Part shown: piece after piece, positions 3,001-44,400 of the stretch | Layout of the letters: every line of letters begins with the position of its first letter | How positions within the stretch are numbered: position 1 is the stretch's first letter | Assembly (NCBI GenBank): GCA_965637545.1 | Contig: OZ281497.1 | Location: 17,050,001 to 17,114,000 of the forward strand | DNA length: 64,000 nucleotides | Reading direction: 5' to 3' | DNA from: Phallusia mammillata | Lineage: Eukaryota | Made by a program: the position numbers and the translations under genes | Notes under the pieces: generated by a model | What the model was told of the DNA's origin: nothing | Databases searched by the model: none | The model's input: the letters and a program-made list of their open reading frames with translations, nothing else

Positions 3001-4315
3001 TCTCTGCAACAAAATAATAACATGCTTGTAATTTTAGACTTTATGTATAACAGAGTTAAATTTGAGTCAACCTACTTGGTTGCTTTCATTTGACTTTTCT
3101 TCTTCTTTTTGTTTCCAGCCTTCTCTTCCAGTTTTTGCTTGTCTACTCTTGGTTCTATGTCATCAAATGGGTTTGCCAAAACCTATAAATAAGTAAAATG
3201 TAATTGTCAGATCACTGAGTTTGTCACAGTGTTTAAATTCTCGGAAGTTTTTACTCCATATTCACTTCATATTTTTCAAAAATTGAATAATAATCTTTTC
3301 CCCAACATAACAGGTGTTGACGTAAATACATAGCATCTAAATAACTTGCTCATAAGCAGGCACTACCAGCTGGTTTGAAAGGATATTACCTATCATCATT
3401 TATTAAAACACCATTATTCATTTAAAATCACATAAACAAACTGTTAGTTGGAAGTTTGAATATTAAAACTGTCAGCATATAACACAGCATGGTTTCAACT
3501 TGTACCTTGGTCCATTTAATAAATGGAGGGTTAATAGGACGTTCATCACCAGTTGTCCCAACTTCACCAAGTCGAACAAGATTGTAGACTGTATCCCCTG
3601 TTACCTAAAAACAAGTAACAATCTTTTTACAATATTTGAAACACTGTATAAATACATTATGTTTTTGAAATCGTCCACTGAATATTACCTTGCCAAATAT
3701 GGTGTGTTTCTTATTTAAATCATTACATGGGCCAAGGGTGAAAAAGAATTGACTTCCATTATCATCTGGACCTGAATTTGCCATGGCAACAAGACCTCTT
3801 CGAACAAATCGCAACCTTGAGTGAAACTCATCCTGATATAAAACATAGACTGTGTTTACACTGATACACACACAAATACATTCAATCTGCTCAGATTGTA
3901 CCTTAAATGGTTTTCCAAATACAGATTCCCCACCCTGACCAGTACCAGTTGGGTCACCTCCTTGCACACAAAAGTTTGGGACAACTCGATGAAAAATTAC
4001 ATTGTTGTAGTATCCTTGTGAATGACAAATGGGGAATATTAAAATCTTTGACCAGACTGGGGCATCATAATCATAATCAAATTAGAAACAGAAAATGTAA
4101 CTGTCATAAGTTAAATTAGCACTTTTGACAACATTTTGTGATTTTTTATTAGTGCTAAATAACTGTTGTTAATCACCTTCCAAACATAGCTGCACAAAGT
4201 TGCGGCATGCTATTGGTGCTTCTTTTGACCATAGTTCAACATCTATATCACCCATAGAAGTATGAAGTAAAACCTTTCCAAATGTACTTGGTTCTTTAAT
4301 GTAAATGTTACTCAT
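7..4315 (-). CDS. CWC27: Spliceosome-associated cyclophilin CWC27, 14 coding exons, about 513 aa
   Basis: Phase-consistent GT-AG exons: 4177-4315, 3902-4014, 3689-3832, 3506-3604, 3076-3182, 2934-3003, 2449-2574, 2267-2383, 2158-2204, 1973-2109, 1470-1576, 754-899, 274-411, 7-58. Diagnostic peptides: MSNIYIKEPSTFGKVLLHTSMGDIDVELWSKEAP, QGGDPTGTGQGGES, NGSQFFFTLGPCNDLNKKHTIFGK (acidic residue where cyclophilin A has Trp121, as in CWC27), FKLLSFGEEAEEEE, KSKSSHDVLNDPKLS, EELKKESKRL, DRFDISDPRNPLNQRRRE. Confidence 0.95.
995..1275. mobile_element. Non-autonomous hAT MITE (Buster-like) in a CWC27 intron
   Basis: Imperfect TIRs CAGTGGTTCCCAACC ... GGTGGGGAACTACTG, flanked by an exact 8-bp TSD GTTTATGC (987-994 and 1276-1283). 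No coding capacity. Confidence 0.9.
1609..1886. mobile_element. Degenerate hAT-type MITE in a CWC27 intron
   Basis: Right end TTGAGAACCACTG (to 1886) matches the TIR family of the other MITEs. The left end is degenerate and its boundary approximate; no clean TSD. Confidence 0.45.
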
Positions 4316-6516
4316 ATTGCAGATTTTACCAGAGAGAAGATATGCAACTAGTTTTGTACAAATGAAAATGTTTTTCCTGCCAGTTGATGTGATGTTCAAT
4401 TAATAGAACCTAATCAATGATCAAATTAAAGTCACAAACCCATCTTAACAAAACATAAAATACCAAGAAATGTACTGGATTTTCGACTACGTGCAAGCAT
4501 ATAGCAGCTCGCTGTTATATAGTCGTCGTAGATAAAAATCAAAAGGTAACATTTTTTCTGTTTTGTAAACTCGCTTTTGTAAATTAACTCCAGCGCGCAA
4601 ACACTGCTCGAAGGGGAATCACCTGCACATTTGGGAAAGATGTTTACTCTGCCCTCATTGTTTTGTACCGAATATTATTTGACCACCAATGCATAGTTTA
4701 AACAAATACTACAACTGTTTGCATTGCAAATTATTTTTACTAAATACTAGACTTTTTCTTATCAGTACTTTCGTCATCAAATTTTTGTTTGAGGTGACGA
4801 TAACCTAAATGCATTAAAAACAACACCGACATAGTCAGTTTCATTCTTCAAATCCAATCGTGACAATCATTCATTTTTTACTTTCATTGAGAACTATAAT
4901 CGATTATATCGAGTATGAGACCCGCAGATTATTACCCTGATTAATGCCGGCTGCTGGCCGAAAACAGCCAGAGATTTCTACAATTATCTGAAGAAGTTTC
5001 CACTCATTTGTATATGTACTATTTATTAAAAGCAAACAACAAAAACAACAACATGGCATCTATTCAATGTGACGACGAATTGTGGGCGCGATGGTAGAAC
5101 AAAAAATACAGTCATTAGAATAAGAGGGCTTGCAAAAAATAATCTGAACAAGAAATACGACGACATATGCTGAAACGTGCGGCTGTGAAAAATCAAAAGC
5201 CGAAAAAATAAAGAGGTGCGCAAAATAAGTGAGGAATGAGTACAGAGAAAGAATAAAATGAAAACTTTTCAAAACAATGTTTAATAGTGGTTACTGTTGG
5301 TTAATTAAAACTAGTTAACAACATGTTGGGAAACAACTTGCTATTTTATATGATTTATTAAAGACCCACACAATAGACCACTAATAGGCCTATCTTAAAA
5401 TCCTCCACCCTAAGTTTTTCAACAGTTCAGTTTGTGAGAAGAATTGCGGTGAAGGCTTTATGCTGACATCAGCATCTTCAAGTCGTTTTGCGCTTGTCGA
5501 AATTCGAAAAAGGGTAAAAGGCGATCGCACACAACACAACTCGTACAGTGAGGGGCGGTGGACAGAATTTTATCACAAGCGACGCAAGAAAAACAAAAGT
5601 TGGCGAATGTCGACAAGCAATAAATAGTGCACTACAGAATAGGGGTACGCACAATTACCTAGTTCCTACACATCCACACAAGTAAAAAATGGGCTTCGTT
5701 GGGTTTTTCAAAAAATATTTTTGCTTCAACTTGCAACAATTTTAGTCTTGCTAAAAATACGTTGAAAAGTGTAATTTTGACTTCACTTTTAACTTGAACA
5801 ATGCCTGATGGAGGTTAAAGCAAGTGCAACAGCTTTGCACCTGACCAGGATTAAATAGATGGGAACAATTGTGGGAATAAAAGGGTGATCGTCGAGCAAC
5901 AAACAAAAGACAATTATTTAGAAAGGTGTAAAATCTAAGAAAAACGAATTGTCCTGTTCCATTTCTTTCTGTTGAGCATGAAACCCAAAGTCTACAGCAC
6001 AAATTATTTGACTTCAGATGTCTTGATGCTCATAAAACAAAAGAAACAGAAAAGGAATTTCGTCATTCTATGGTGGTTGTTATCCTAAGAGCGACACAGT
6101 ATCGCAATATAGAAATAATAATAAAAAACTACACCGCACACAATACCTTTTCCCTTTTGGAAAAGTGACAACATGATGACGATACTGTGTGATATGAACA
6201 GTTACGCACTAGTGTAAGTGATCAATTGCAATAACGGTGATATCAAAGATTTGTAAAGTGTTTAAGTGGGTGGGGCGAACAAATCGTACCATAAGTAAAA
6301 CACAACTCCTGTACGATTTGCCACAGTTACATAAAAACAACATTCCAAACTACATGACGGAAATACGTCAAAGCCACCTTGGACATTTTTTTATCCTTAG
6401 GCGGGGCCAACTTTTATACCCATATTAGGAAACAGGCAGTTTTGAGCGCAGTCTTAAACGCCGTCCCTTATTCCGGAGCGTAGCGATGTTTTTGCGTCCG
6501 GGTCAGCAGAGTGAGA

Positions 6517-8473
6517 TCACCGGTCACGGCAGGAACGCAGGCTGGGTGTGTTGAGGGCGTCGTCCTTAAAGCTTACAACCTCACCATGGATCTTAAAGGT
6601 CGACACACAACCGACAAACGAGTGGAAAAATGATTTGTAGAGGCCGACGCCTCTGGGTCGATAGTCCACACCACCTAAAAACAAAGCAAAGCGCGTTTTA
6701 TTTTCGTTTCGAAGAAAAGGTGAATGTTATTGCAGCGTATTGAACCTAGATTTAGTAATTGCATCCGTTTAAACTCCATAACATTGTAATGTTGCGGAGC
6801 TGTTTTCAGTTCGATAATTGTTTTAGTGCAATTGTGCAATTTTGTGTTTGTCTTTATTGCATAAAATATTTCTTACACATATGCTAATGAAGAAACATTG
6901 AAAATGCATGCACAAGGGCAGAATTCAGTTAGGCTATTGCTTACCGATCCAAACATTTCCATCTGTGTTCAGTTCCCGGGTATTTCCCTGCGCTACAACC
7001 TCTTGTGGTATTCCGTTATCGACGCTCAGCGTGGCTTTGGCGAATTTTCTGTATGTGCAAGTTGGGTTTTAGCAAAACAATGCTCCCGAATCAAGCCAAT
7101 TTATAATATACTTTAATAGATCGCACCTGTCCACTTTGATGGTGTGGAAACTGTTGTCGTTAATTCGCTCTTCCGAAATAAGGTGAGCAGGACCAGAACC
7201 GAGGTTAAATCGCAAGTGGACTCGTCCGTCGCTAATAGTTACAGCCAAGTAATCATGGTTGTCGATCGCCTTGCCGGCCATGAGCAGCAGACCGTGACGC
7301 GCAGTGGTGCGTATCACAAGCTCGAAGCGATTATGGCGAGTTGCTCGACTCCTTAAATAGAAAGAGTGTTAAGAAAGGAGGTTAACTAAATGAATTGGAT
7401 TTGGGCAAGTGGGAAAAAGTAATGTATTGGTTGAATGGTTCATATAATTTCTAAATGAACTCAGATACCCATGCACTGATGACGTTTGTTTTTCCACAAA
7501 AAGTTTTAAATTTTGAAACAAAGTCTATGATTTAGAGACATATACGTTGTATGCTTTGCTGCAGAAACCACTACAAACGCATAGTTTTGTAAGTTTTCAA
7601 CATAACACAATGCATGAAAACGTACTTAGGGGCAAAAGACAATGCATGCCGATTAAGAACAACAAAATCATGTTGATTTTGTAAATTTGTGGTATATGAC
7701 ATGGAATGTACTTAAACAAAAACTACATTTAAGAAAAGGAATCGGAAACTAAAACAAAAAGTTTTTGTAGAGCATAAAGTGTGATGACAAAACAAGAAAA
7801 CATTTCGAAGTTTTAAATATTGATCAAGTTATGTGGACAAAATGATTTCAATGACTGTTAGAATGAAGACACATTAACTGGTTAGTTTCCAAAAACACTC
7901 GTCTTACATTGGAGTGAAGGCCCTGCAAAAACGACAATAGATAGAAAATTGTCACCAGTTGTAGTAAACCTGTTTAACTTGTAGTGAAAATGTAGTTTTA
8001 ACAGTTAACTAACAATAAATAAATTACTTTGACCACGATTTGATGAATGATGAGCGACTGATGGCATGAATACTTACATTGGAATAAAATTGTTTTTGCT
8101 CTCTCTTGCGGGTGGCAAGAAAAAAGTAAATTAGATAAGGATTTAAGTTAAAAATGTCAAGATCTCTACCAATTTCCATTGCACTATATTTTCGCACCTA
8201 AGTTCTGACAGTCTAATCTGGAGGTTACTATAACGCATACGTTTACCCATCATTACTTAACACAAAATACGATTAAAACAGAAAAAAACGTTTTAAAAAT
8301 TTACGAACGGTCATGTTATTCTTAGTATTTAAAATGCAAAAACTTTAAACAAAATGTAACTTACTTTTCCTTCACTGCATTCCTGTACATTGCCACCACC
8401 TTCCCGTCGAAGTAAACCGCCGACGCCGCTTCATCGCGTAATACATTGACTGAACTTGTTCTTTCAGATGCCC
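6517..8473 (-). CDS. AGRN: Agrin LG3 domain exons
   Basis: AVYFDGKVVAMYRNAVKEK / SRATRHNRFELVIRTTARHGLLLMAGKAIDNHDYLAVTISDGRVHLRFNLGSG ... LNTDGNVWIGG ... FVGCVSTF ... SC; TGA at 6517-6519. Confidence 0.92.
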
Positions 8474-11400
8474 CTGTTTGAACAACAACATAAAAAACTT
8501 TAAAGTCAAGTTATTGATTTGAAACGTATGAAAAGGACTTAACGGAACAATCGTCATTTTTGTTTTTGTTTTTTAACTGAAAAAGTTTCTGTTTATATGA
8601 TTTGGGCTAACTTCCGTAATATGGACCAGACTTATATTCTTGCAAGTATGCATTAACGGGCAAAAACGGACTTCACTTACACTATAATACAAAGCCAATT
8701 TGACCAAACCGCGAATATTCGGTACAATTTTTTCAAAAGAATGGTAAAATCAATGATGGAAAATGGGTTAATTATAAATTGCATTACAAATTTGATTTTT
8801 ATTTCAACTTACGTTCGTCGCAACGGGAACCGGCGTAACCCTCTGCACACAAGCAGGTGAACTCGGCTTTACGGGGATAACACGTTCCACCATTCTCACA
8901 AGGTTTATGATAACACGCATGTGCATTGAAGGGCTGCACATTCCACTGCGCAACTCCGCCACCAGGAGTCAGAGACAGCGATATCCCGTTGACTTCAAAC
9001 TACAAACATAAACACTTTGTTACTCCGAAATATCGACACAAACATCGTTTCATTAGTGGGTGGTAACATTGTTGCCAAAATATGAAATCAGACAGGTATG
9101 TTTATTTATTTCCAGTCAGCAACCTGGAAAAATAGTAACAAAGAGAAATGTGCCGTAAACAAAAAAAGCTTAAGCAAGGACAAAAAAAGCAATCATTTCA
9201 CAATTTTTCAAAAATCGGCAGTTTTCTTTTTTCCTTTTCGTTACAAAGCCCCTGTTTGAAGTGTGAATCAAAGTGCAGTCATTTTTCCTCCTATGTGCCA
9301 ACAATTTTGCGTTGAGTAAAAAAATCTTTTTATCTTCATTTTTTTGTTTAAAAAAAATCGTTTTATCTTTATAACTTACCTTTTGTAAGGCTCCAACAAG
9401 GCCAGTTGTAATCCCGGTTGCTTTCGGTATCTTAGTGTAGTCAGGAACTCCACCCAGATATAAAGGTTGGTCCACGTTCAACTCAGAGTGGAGATTCTGT
9501 CGCAATAAAAATAAAATAAAAATGTCAATCCCTGTCAGCAGATAAGTGATAAACTCAGCTCAGCCGAGGCATATCCTGAAAAGCCTTTCGTTCTGGAACT
9601 TACCCAATGCTTCATATACCATTTGCGCTAGCGTGAAAAAGCATAAAAATTCAGTTAAAATGTGTCAACTGAAACACATTTATACCACAACAATCTCAAA
9701 AAACATCGACATAACCACGACATCAAGTATGTATTACCAACGGCAGCAAGCATGTCGAAACAACATTTTGTAACCAAATGTCTTGAGTATATATTATTAT
9801 CACTAATGCATGACTTTGACGTGCACAATTTTCACGCTTCTGTGCATCGTTTTTAAATGTAAAACAACAGCGAAACCACATAAGACACTAATACGGCAAA
9901 CGAACCTTGTTTTTCACGGACGTGCGAGCTTTCTGTGATATATAACATTCAGAGGTGAAAATCTACCGATTACCGGATGTCCCCTATCCTTAAGTACTAT
10001 AACTTATAATATAGTCTATAAGCTACCCTATTGACAATATAAAGCCCATAAAATAAAACTATCGCTGAATAAACGTGTTATGGAATGGCTGTGAACTTAC
10101 CGGTGACGTTCCCTGGACTGTAGGTCCGTTGTCAATTGACATCTCACCATGACGATTCTCACGTGACAATCGAACCACGTGCCACTCGTTGAGGCCAACC
10201 GGTGACGCACTCCTAATACATTAAATGTGGAATTAGTTGAGCTTACCTAAATGCCTTTTAACAAACGATGCACTCTAGTAAAGTAATACACCTATTTTAT
10301 TTATTTTCAAGTTACCTTATTTTTGCCAACCCCTGTCCAAGATCGTACATGTATACAAGATATCCGTCTTTGAGGTTAAGAGCTACCAAGTCTCTCCTAC
10401 TCTTGCCCTCCTTCTGTTGATCGTTGTAGAAAATCAAACCTGGGCATAAAAGGTCTTACACATTAGATATTTGGCTTTGCCCGCGCTCTTGGGTGCTCTA
10501 TAGGGCAGCAGTTTTGTTCTACTTTTTCTTATCTGTAGCAAAGGTGTTATTATCAATGCATGTTACACAACATTGAAGAACTGGGATCTAACTATTGACT
10601 TTATAAGAAATGTGAAATTATGAATAAACTTGAACTGACCGTCGGGTTGACTTGAATAAAACAAAACTTCCACCGACATTGACGAAGCGACGTCACTGCT
10701 CAATGGTTCAAACTGCAAGTAGGAATCCTCGGCAAACGCAGGCATGTAACCGGGACCACCCAAGTCAAGTTCGGCTGTAAGAAAAAACAATACAACTGCT
10801 AATCCATACCCACATAAGTAATGCAGTGGTTCGTGGCTCGGTACCAAACTACACATATTGTAAGCTAATACAAAAAATCGAAGAAATTGGCTAGCAACGT
10901 TAGTATGATTTGTATTGTGAGACGTAAAGCGGATTTTGGCAACAAATAAGTTTAACACGGAGTTCTACGATTTTCATTTTGTCGTGAACACTCTAACTTT
11001 GTCACCAATTTCAAAAGCACAACGACTTTCGCTTTGCAAAGATAAACTTTTGCGACAAATTTTAAACATTGGCCTAATTAGATTTTTATGTACTTACATA
11101 TAGAACAGACACCTTACATTAAAATAACAGCAAGTTACTCAAACAAAACAGTTTAAACTCACAATCCATACAAAGGGATCCGGACCTTCCAGGCGGACAC
11201 ACACAAGTGTAACCGTCACCATTTTCACTCCTCACACATGTTGATGACAAGTGACACTGATGGGCGATACATGGATCTTTCGGTTTCTTTGTAACAGGTT
11301 GTTCACATGTGGGTCCTGCATTAAACGACAGTGTTTCGTTATACCGCATCGAGAGCATTTCTTAAAAGGTTTACGAAGAAATCTTACCTTCGAATAATCC

Positions 11401-41400: not shown

Positions 41401-44400
41401 GCGTATTAGGTGGAATAATATTACTGTCTAAAAATACTGACAAAATACTGGCTTCGGGTATAGACTGGAGAAGTGAACTAGTGTCCCTTTACATAAAGAA
41501 AGTGTGCGTGTGGGCAAGAAAGTAAAGCTGTGGTAAAGAATGCTGAGAGCATGACCCTGTGAAGTTTGCTATTTGCTTAATAAACAGTCTCAACCACAAG
41601 TGAATAGACGTGGCACCGCGCACTGTCGACATTGGGCACCTCGGAAGAGAATCACGCCAGCCCAGGTACGGCGGTTTGGTGTCTCATTTGAAATTTAAAG
41701 GCAAAGGTTTATGGACACTTAAACTTGTGCAGACAGTATGTCATAAATATTTGTCCGAACAAAGCCACGTGAAATTTTGACCGTAAAGTCTTTGCCTGAA
41801 ATTTACACAAAATTTACTTCGAATTGACGAAATGATAAGGAAATGTGGATTTGGTTGTACAGCATCTATAACCAATAGCGCGACAACATACCTTAGTAGT
41901 TAATCGGCTGTGGTTAGATTTTAACAGCACTTGGAATCAGTGTGTGCACTCGAGTAGCGGAACACAAAGGCCGGGTTTCCGCCCCGTCGTAGGAAGAGGT
42001 GCGATCAAGTTCAAACTATGCGGGACAAGAGGATATGAGCACACTCGAAAATCGTTGCTTGGTTGCTTCGCGCAAACTTCGCTGCAAAATTGTTTCCCAT
42101 TCTTACCTTGCAGTCGCTAAGCAGTTGATACAACGCACATCGGTGACGTCAAACAAGGGCTTCATGCAAGAGTAGTTTGTTGTGACGAATGCCTGAATGA
42201 CTTCGTGTCATTCTAGAAACTGTTTTTGTAGATCATGGTTAAGTTCTACAATAGACAACACACCGGACAAATGCACGGTATTTTGCAAAGGCATTCCTAT
42301 GACAACGATACGATAATAAATTCACATTACGACATTCAGCTTGTTGTTGATCATGTCCAGATTTTACTCCAACCATGTAAGATAACAAAGTAGTCCTGTC
42401 CACTCCGAACGCAACGACTATCAATACAGATCAATCAGAATTTACCGAGTGTAAAAAACTCAAAACAGGGGGCAAATTGCGTGTAACGCCAAGAATGCTT
42501 ATTGGGCGAAGAGCCGAACAGGTATAATCCGGCAACTACCGGTGACTACCTAATTTGTTGCAAAGGTCGACTTGGTGCATGTGGTGATTTCGGTGGCTTG
42601 CAATCACGCACGGCGGTTGTAAAAGTAATAGCCGGCATTGTTGACAGATCGGACGACAAGATGTCTGAAGCCATCATGCAAGCGAACACAAAGAGGCCGA
42701 ACGAGTGGGCGGCGCGTCTGTCATCTTCTTGACGGTCGTAAATTTGTCGCAATGCAACTCGGGCGCCTCCCACGCGCATTCAACGAGTCCGGACGTTTAT
42801 TTGCACACCGAAGGCTGGTGGCTGACCAAGTTTTTAAATCCGCTATACTCGCATTACCTAATTCCAAAAGTTGTTGACCAATTTAAGCCAACATGTTGAA
42901 ACAAAATCGCATATGGCATTATTCTTGAATGTAACAGTACATTTGTGGAGCGATTGTGCAGTTGCTGAAAATGTTTGGCACACTAACACAATAAACACAG
43001 TCAATTCCCACACCCTTCATCACAGGGTACGGTCAAGGACTTGGGCTGAGAGTCAGTTCCGCTTGTTGGTTGACAACGACCTTTCGGCAACAAAATTGAT
43101 GCTAATTCAAGTTTCTTTCGACACTACGAGCAAGCCGTGTAAGATAATTCGATCAAAGGCGTAACTGTTAACTTGGTTTGCGCCATGGCGGTTTCCTTTG
43201 CTGCAGGGAAAGCGACAGCGCGGATTTGGGGCTGGGACAAAAGAGCAACACACTGCGGTTTGTCGGTCGCCATGTTAAGCCATAAGTCGGTAAAAACAAA
43301 CAACATGCAAGGCGCTGTCCCCACAAAAGACACAACAACAGACCCACGGGCGTTAAGCTTCATTTGTAAAGCGTTTGGGGTCCAGACGCAAACAAAGAGA
43401 TTTTAGTCTGTGATATCGGGTTCAAACCACAATAAACAAAGCCGAAAATTCGGTTTGAAAGTAAATGTGCGACGTCCACAAACAAAAAAGTGACAGTGCA
43501 ATTGCAAAAGTCAAAATCTGAAATTTACGAGAAATACAGTTACCTTTGGTTTATTTGTCTCGACCCATCTGTTCCATCTTGTATGCAACTTGTGGTTAAC
43601 AAACAATTTTTGAGCACATAAGTACAGTGTGAACTTTATCGCAGAAGTCTGTAACGTCTACCGTCCTAAAACATCACTACTTCTACAAAAGCGTAACAAG
43701 GTCGGAGAATAGTAGATGAGAATGAGAAGAGCACACAAGTGGGATTCCGCCAAGTGGCAAACATCCACAACGAGAGGCGTGGGAGTGTGCCAAGTGCAGT
43801 CACATCGATCAGTCCCTCGTACTGCTAACAAGCGGCAAACCACCACGGCCCAAAACAAACCACAGGTATTCGATCGTCCAGTTTACCGCGAGCAAATATT
43901 CAAACAGCCACACCATGGCAACAGAACTCGACGCATGTCCGTTGCATTCACCTCAGGGTCGTCTCGCCCACCCCCAGCTTTTGTCCGTGCCACAATACGG
44001 CGTAACAGAAGACGCGATTTCGGCGGCGTTTTCAACACAACAATGTGACTCTCGTTGCCGAAACCTCGCGACTTTGGAGCTCGGACGGAACCCAGCGTCG
44101 GTTCGCATTGAATATGACAGAGCGACTGAAATAAGTCGGCCCAAAGGTGCTTGTTAAATATTTGTAGGTGTTGAAAAACGCCTGCATCAACTGACTGCGT
44201 ATAATGCCCCGTTGGGAACAAAGCCTTTTTGTCACTGAGATTGTCTACGTCTGTGACAAGGGTGCTCGTTTAGAAAAAGATACTCCCTTAAAGCGCATTT
44301 TTATGTACTTCGTGGGTCAATAGCAGAAATACAGAACAACGCAACAGACCAAATATACTTCTTGATAAATTCAGCACAATAAAATCTCAATTTTCACTGC

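Follow-up and report, generated by a model that had tools for sequence, protein, structure and literature searches.

The 64,000-nucleotide (nt) stretch of the Phallusia mammillata genome analyzed here (assembly GCA_965637545.1, contig OZ281497.1, positions 17,050,001 to 17,114,000; hereafter the window) carries on its minus strand the gene for agrin, and the element of interest is a 24-nt exon of this gene, named Yb, which encodes the peptide RKWYMKHW and lies, together with a 27-nt upstream partner named Ya, in laminin-G domain 2 (LG2). An agrin orthologue is recognized by an NtA domain, a follistatin/Kazal array, laminin-EGF domains, a serine/threonine-rich region, EGF domains, three C-terminal LG domains and best reciprocal similarity. 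Pfam searches of the minus strand of the window recovered Kazal, laminin-EGF and EGF domains as well as three laminin-G exon sets. The Phallusia agrin held in public databases (CAB3220652.1, UniProt A0A6F9D5B5, P0052 in our protein set; 2141 amino acids), with the Pfam set NtA, Kazal, EGF_laminin and Laminin_G, follows the window one exon after another, from 51042 to 6520, with an identity of about 100%. The gene is identified as agrin by this Pfam set, by the mapping of CAB3220652.1 and by LG2 exons that have agrin as their top match in the Protein Data Bank (PDB). Four internal residues of the protein record differ from the window (C21F, V29I, A282S, A316V) and, for this reason, CAB3220652.1 represents an independent haplotype.

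Two constitutive LG2 exons flank the 604-nt intron that contains Yb. This exon had been singled out in a first-pass annotation, made from the letters of the sequence, as a phase-0 exon at 9604-9627 with a GTAAGT donor and a T-rich TAG acceptor, and both coordinates and sequence proved exact. Read on the minus strand, it is preceded by ...tttttatgctttttcacgctag, followed by gtaagt and free of stop codons, being an in-frame microexon with canonical splice sites. No other exon-like unit of the intron comes close to it, and it is the sole strong candidate there; among sequences drawn from the dinucleotide transitions of the 604-nt intron (first-order Markov simulation), a Yb-like unit arose in 0.06-1.4% of the cases, depending on stringency. 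Units of Yb quality are completely lacking on the plus strand of the whole 64-kb window, and on the minus strand an equal pyrimidine richness (0.8) combined with a GTAAGT donor is found in only one other unit, a candidate Z-site microexon at 8104-8078. This candidate is absent from CAB3220652.1, which reads …YRNAVKEK/SRATRHNRFEL…. The first-pass annotation had described Yb and overlooked its 27-nt partner Ya, which encodes KARTSVKNK.

Inclusion of the two exons is seen in a public protein record, and skipping in RNA contigs. CAB3220652.1 reads GTSP-KARTSVKNK-RKWYMKHW-NLHSELNV, with Ya and Yb both included, and its residues 1835-1842 map to Yb at 100%. The same protein carries no Z insert and therefore is not a model in which everything has been included. 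The RNA evidence consists of Logan contigs assembled from four runs, each belonging to a different study, all of which join 10101 directly to 9496; the form lacking both exons (y0) exists and dominates the four contig assemblies. Contigs of this kind drop minor variants, so that the y0 contigs do not demonstrate absence of inclusion. Ya and Yb, included in the protein record and skipped in the contigs, are most probably cassette exons. The junctions expected for Yb are probably 10101 to 9932, 9906 to 9627 and 9604 to 9496. The last of these had already been proposed and is kept; a direct junction from 10101 to 9627, also proposed earlier, is probably not the usual one, because Yb follows Ya in CAB3220652.1, and the contigs show 10101 to 9496 only.

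The 604-nt intron corresponds exactly, by alignment, to the y/A splice site in LG2 of vertebrate agrin. In fact, the GTSP that ends the upstream exon aligns with GESP 1748-1751 of human agrin (8s9p_A), its last residue being P1751, while the third residue (H) of the downstream exon aligns with H1758, leaving exactly four human residues between the two exons. The best PDB matches of the downstream exon are residues 1758-1793 of agrin 8s9p_A and mouse agrin G2 (3pve). Moreover, teleost agrin isoforms occur with and without the vertebrate insert at this point (GEAP-KSRK-NLHVDLNLKE vs GEAP/NLHVDLNLKE), and in a 35-sequence LG2 alignment every insert falls in the same columns. Within LG2, Yb takes precisely the place of the vertebrate KSRK, with the equivalent residues on either side. 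The position of the exon between GTSP and NLHSELNV, claimed in the first-pass annotation together with its identity as the y/A site, is confirmed by RNA contigs for both flanking exons and by the four-residue gap and the teleost isoforms for the site. The vertebrate role cited there is likewise documented: KSRK lies next to the Ca2+ site of LG2, within the J-K loop, where it makes the domain bind heparin and weakens its binding of alpha-dystroglycan (PMC6450144; PMC10139058).

Other y-site inserts are seen in some teleost RefSeq isoforms, namely VRKST, VRKSK, VGDKKP, VRDG and KKSRK (in P0098, P0100, P0120, P0153 and P0126); the inserts that begin with V could reflect either reading through the donor or the use of alternative 5' splice sites. 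The seven lamprey agrin records hold no y-site insert, which, in protein records considered apart from lamprey DNA, says little.

Ascidian counterparts were sought by searching protein representatives with the downstream exon and following the ascidian agrins retrieved to their genomic loci. The remaining protein representatives turned out to be perlecan, pikachurin or proteins without a name, and a word search of protein records returned no further tunicate agrins. In Ciona intestinalis, both exons are present in the DNA in the Phallusia order and with AG/GT sites. The Yb exons of the two species share 5/8 amino acids (R1, W3, Y4, K6 and H7) and 17/24 nt, and the Ya exons 6/9 residues; when the Ciona intron was shuffled 5000 times, this identity was never matched for either exon. 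Furthermore, the public Ciona isoforms comprise y0, y9 (Ya included) and y17 (Ya plus Yb): in RefSeq, X3 and X5 are y0 and X1, X2, X4, X6, X7 and X8 carry KAIPPVKNK, while the UniParc isoform UPI00089DC9F0 contains KAIPPVKNK followed by RQWYWKHR, this Ciona Yb being found in P0177 of our protein set. A different Ciona model, UniProt F6ZH24, shows a seeming y insert of 4-5 residues, VSNMI, which was rejected as a counterpart: in the Ciona DNA (L004 6915-6929) it is the translated donor gtaagtaatatgata, included either by an error of the model or through a putative alternative donor.

The arrangement of a 27-nt exon followed by a 24-nt exon is retained in Clavelina lepadiformis and in ENA ERZ25067582, where the agrin LG2 region, of ascidian type, occurs identically in two contigs. 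The Clavelina Ya shares 5/9 residues with that of Phallusia, a significant similarity (1/5000 shuffles). In general, Ya is more widely conserved than Yb, and a weak donor of the type ...AAG/gtttg is common among Ya-type exons across species. The coordinates of all these features are collected in Table 1.

Table 1. Positions of the y-site exons, their splice signals and their ascidian counterparts (window coordinates for Phallusia; coordinates of the respective genomic locus for other species)
Feature	Position	Strand	Details and evidence
Constitutive LG2 exon, upstream flank of the y site	10101..10212	-	ends ...IDNGPTVQGTSP (NGPTVQGTSP); RNA contigs of 4 runs, translation
Phallusia Ya, 27-nt phase-0 microexon, probable cassette	9906..9932	-	KARTSVKNK; acceptor ...tatatatcacag, weak donor gttcgt; open AG..GT unit, in CAB3220652.1
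Yb 3' splice region	9628..9670	-	branch-like TTAAC, pyrimidine tract (16/20) with UGC at 9643, then TAG acceptor
Phallusia Yb, 24-nt phase-0 microexon, probable cassette	9604..9627	-	RKWYMKHW; CGCAAATGGTATATGAAGCATTGG; donor gtaagt; translation, mapping of CAB3220652.1
Yb donor	9598..9603	-	GTAAGT, then a 107-nt intron before the next exon
Constitutive LG2 exon, downstream flank of the y site	9380..9496	-	starts NLHSELNVDQPLYLGGVPDY (NLHSELNVDQPLYLGG; NLHSELNV); RNA contigs, PDB matches
Ciona intestinalis Ya (L004)	7308-7334		KAVPPVKNK, donor gtttgt
Ciona intestinalis Yb (L004)	7536-7559		RQWYWKHR, donor gtatgc
Clavelina lepadiformis Ya (L001)	5815-5841		KAIPAVRNK; unannotated
Clavelina lepadiformis Yb (L001)	5992-6015		HAWLLTHR; unannotated
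Ascidian contigs ENA ERZ25067582, Ya (L002/L003)			KFLANSVTS; unannotated
Ascidian contigs ENA ERZ25067582, Yb (L002/L003)			HDSYWKQL; unannotated
Styela clava single microexon (L005)	42445-42459		15 nt, RSKAK, donor gtttgt; no Yb; RefSeq isoforms y0 or RSKAK

Two side observations complete the description of these loci. Downstream of agrin, at 3605-4399 on the minus strand of the window, lie open reading frame pieces of a cyclophilin-type peptidyl-prolyl isomerase (…GGDPTGTGQGGESVFG…, …MANSGPDDNGSQFFFTL…). In Styela clava, whose RSKAK is very like the vertebrate KSRK, the RefSeq isoform X5 (P0183, 1813 amino acids) stops right after this insert (…SPRSKAKV), which would agree with read-through of the weak donor gtttgt to a stop codon.

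A homology of Yb to the KSRK exon, one of the two possibilities raised in the first-pass annotation beside convergence, was not upheld: RKWYMKHW has no similarity to KSRK and Yb is missing from Styela. From the alignment, Ya, or RSKAK in Styela, is the likelier homologue; KSRK falls under the start of Ya/RSKAK, although it is too short to prove homology. Yb, matched by nothing in vertebrates or in Styela, seems to have been added within the ascidians.

The most probable reading of these data is, in our judgment, that Yb is a genuine alternatively spliced cassette microexon of agrin, the second of a tandem pair, and that the insert to which it contributes most likely switches the binding of glycosaminoglycans and alpha-dystroglycan. 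According to this proposal, skipping of both exons would give y0, while inclusion of both would add 17 residues to LG2. The resulting insert, KARTSVKNK+RKWYMKHW, contains seven Lys/Arg and one His and lacks acidic residues; at the Ya-Yb junction a K-N-K-R-K cluster is followed by W-Y-M-K-H-W, the Ciona equivalent being K-N-K-R-Q-W-Y-W-K-H-R. By homology with the vertebrate KSRK, the insert would sit at the LG2 rim, within the J-K loop and adjoining the Ca2+ site, where by analogy it would most likely turn on the binding of heparan sulfate/heparin and alter that of alpha-dystroglycan. The heparin binding suggested for Yb derives from composition only. When Phallusia LG2 was modelled in AlphaFold2 with the insert included, the mean predicted local distance difference test (pLDDT) score was 85.3, the insert (model residues 127-143) scoring about 65-72, and among solved structures the model is closest to mouse agrin G2 (3pve), with a template modelling (TM) score of 0.91 on target. 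A helix is predicted over residues 135-142 of the insert. Ya may represent the ancestral patch of basic residues, which Yb would have extended in one lineage, bringing more charge, aromatic side chains and, as modelled, possibly a short helix.

As regards regulation, inclusion is probably under the control of the neural microexon machinery (SRRM eMIC, Nova, PTBP). With 24 nt, Yb stays within the limit of 27 nt for microexons of this kind and has a UGC (9643) located 16 nt ahead of its acceptor; UGCs also precede the Ya acceptors in Ciona, Clavelina and Styela. Such a placement fits a microexon of the eMIC/SRRM type. Near Yb there is no CU-rich tract of the PTB type beyond the short pyrimidine tract.

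Several observations weigh against the reading of Yb as a spliced binding switch. Near the exon, YCAY motifs of the Nova type are not enriched (their density does not exceed the window average) and neither UGCAUG nor GCAUG occurs. The predicted helix rests on moderate pLDDT values and on only two Yb-bearing sequences. No RNA contig of the four runs includes Ya or Yb, and both records that hold the two exons, CAB3220652.1 and UPI00089DC9F0, may derive either from cDNA or from gene prediction. The Ciona RefSeq isoforms listed, X1-X9, hold Ya at most and never Yb. Conservation in relatives, which the first-pass annotation had named as a check, is uneven: Ciona keeps frame, length and five of the eight residues, but the unannotated Yb exons of Clavelina and of the ENA contig are only 2/8 identical to Phallusia, a level equalled by 2-2.4% of shuffles, and Styela has no Yb at all, its 342-nt intron containing a single microexon.

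Some of these points would be expected if Yb were an artefact of gene models, which prediction software would have placed in the Phallusia record and in an old isoform of Ciona, but which would never, or hardly ever, be spliced in vivo. The y0-only contigs of four studies, the lack of Yb from the Ciona RefSeq isoforms and the possible predicted origin of both inclusive proteins agree with this explanation, and the Ciona model F6ZH24 does hold an artefact at the very same site, VSNMI. Nevertheless, length, frame, AG/GT sites and five of eight residues have been kept between Ciona and Phallusia amid otherwise dissimilar introns, which is not expected of unused sequence, and the Phallusia record, omitting the Z-site candidates, is not a maximal model; we consider an artefact improbable. 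Even less can be said for a chance splice-site look-alike devoid of biological role. Short open AG...GT units do arise by chance, and weak ones are present in this same intron, but a unit like Yb is expected in 0.06-1.4% of such introns, and Yb coincides exactly with the y site, is matched by a Ciona orthologue and occurs in a public protein. Conservation and the public record both contradict this explanation, which is extremely improbable.

A more serious alternative accepts the exon as real and conserved and disputes its role. Rather than binding heparin/heparan sulfate, Yb would make or block a contact with a protein (Lrp4, MuSK, integrin or another matrix partner), or would reshape the Ca2+/glycan site of LG2 and in this way tune dystroglycan binding. 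The positions conserved between Phallusia and Ciona include aromatic residues besides charged ones, a short helix, as predicted, would suit a docking element, and the Clavelina counterpart HAWLLTHR, with one Arg and two His, is more hydrophobic. Neurexin LNS structures (1c4r, 2r1b) are among the fold matches of LG2, and in neurexins splice inserts on the same rim of the LNS/LG fold regulate protein ligands. However, the combined insert, devoid of acidic residues, has a net charge of about +7 and occupies the site where the vertebrate KSRK creates heparin binding, and no result of this analysis points to any protein partner. Such a role is possible but, on balance, unlikely, and a switch of glycosaminoglycan/alpha-dystroglycan binding remains our preferred interpretation of the tandem exons.

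The inserts of agrin at the Y and Z sites are a textbook case of tiny exons that alter synaptic matrix signalling. In the one statement on the Y site found in print, KSRK at the A/y site is said to be "missing in invertebrate agrins," Ciona included (Banyai et al., 2010; PMC2874008), and in Caenorhabditis elegans a study of agrin encountered no alternative splicing (PMC1939731). Not until 2025 were the Z exons followed back to tunicates, in a paper on Ciona agrin that deals with Z exons only and mentions neither a Y exon nor a Y site (PMC12445529). As far as the searchable literature goes, the ascidian Y exons are thus undescribed, as the first-pass annotation had supposed for any y exon outside vertebrates, yet these inserts were already present in protein records of RefSeq, UniParc and UniProt, those of Phallusia and Ciona among them. 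Basic microexons spliced into the same loop in ascidians, in one- and two-exon versions, would place the origin of Y-site regulation at least in the common ancestor of tunicates and vertebrates. A tentative scenario, which as a whole we regard as less likely than not, would date Y-site splicing to before the separation of tunicates and vertebrates, with a single short microexon for a basic peptide as its first form (vertebrate KSRK, Styela RSKAK and, in Ciona, Phallusia and Clavelina, K-A-x-x-x-V-K/R-N-K). The lineage of these last three genera would then have added a second, Trp/Tyr-rich microexon, giving, together with the first, a composite glycan- or protein-binding element of 17 residues on the LG2 rim and a three-state y0/y9/y17 switch that would have no vertebrate equivalent. 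CRISPR and minigene assays are available for Ciona agrin, providing a system in which the role of the Y insert, poorly resolved in vertebrates, can be addressed in vivo. Moreover, some annotations deserve attention: the Ciona RefSeq isoforms X1-X9 omit Yb, the one annotated Clavelina agrin record examined omits both Ya and Yb, and F6ZH24 contains the artefact described above.

Among known systems, the closest is the vertebrate Y (A) exon itself (12 nt, KSRK), which belongs to the same gene and to the same intron position of LG2, after G-E/T-S/A-P and before N/V-x-H. Vertebrate and ascidian Y exons are alike as phase-0 microexons for a basic peptide, optional cassettes in vertebrates and most probably so in ascidians. 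They differ in that Ciona, Phallusia and Clavelina possess tandem exons of 27 + 24 nt, with inserts of 9 or 17 residues, and in that the Phallusia Yb is rich in Trp/Tyr, unlike KSRK; heparin binding has been shown only for the vertebrate insert. The inserts of the neurexin LNS domains, such as that at splice site 4 (SS#4), which retune ligand binding, are comparable as optional loop peptides on the Ca2+-binding rim of the LG/LNS fold, although they belong to another protein, are longer and are encoded by exons of ordinary size, so that the resemblance is one of principle only. Within tunicates, the Z6/Z5 exons of Ciona agrin (PLoS Biol 2025, PMC12445529) offer a further parallel, being tandem alternative microexons in an LG domain of the same protein at a site shared with vertebrates. 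They differ from the Y exons in their location in another domain (before LG3), in their N-x-F motif for Lrp4 and in a dependence on Nova that has been shown experimentally, while Yb has no flanking YCAY cluster. In the Ciona isoform records, Z inserts are found combined with Y inserts.

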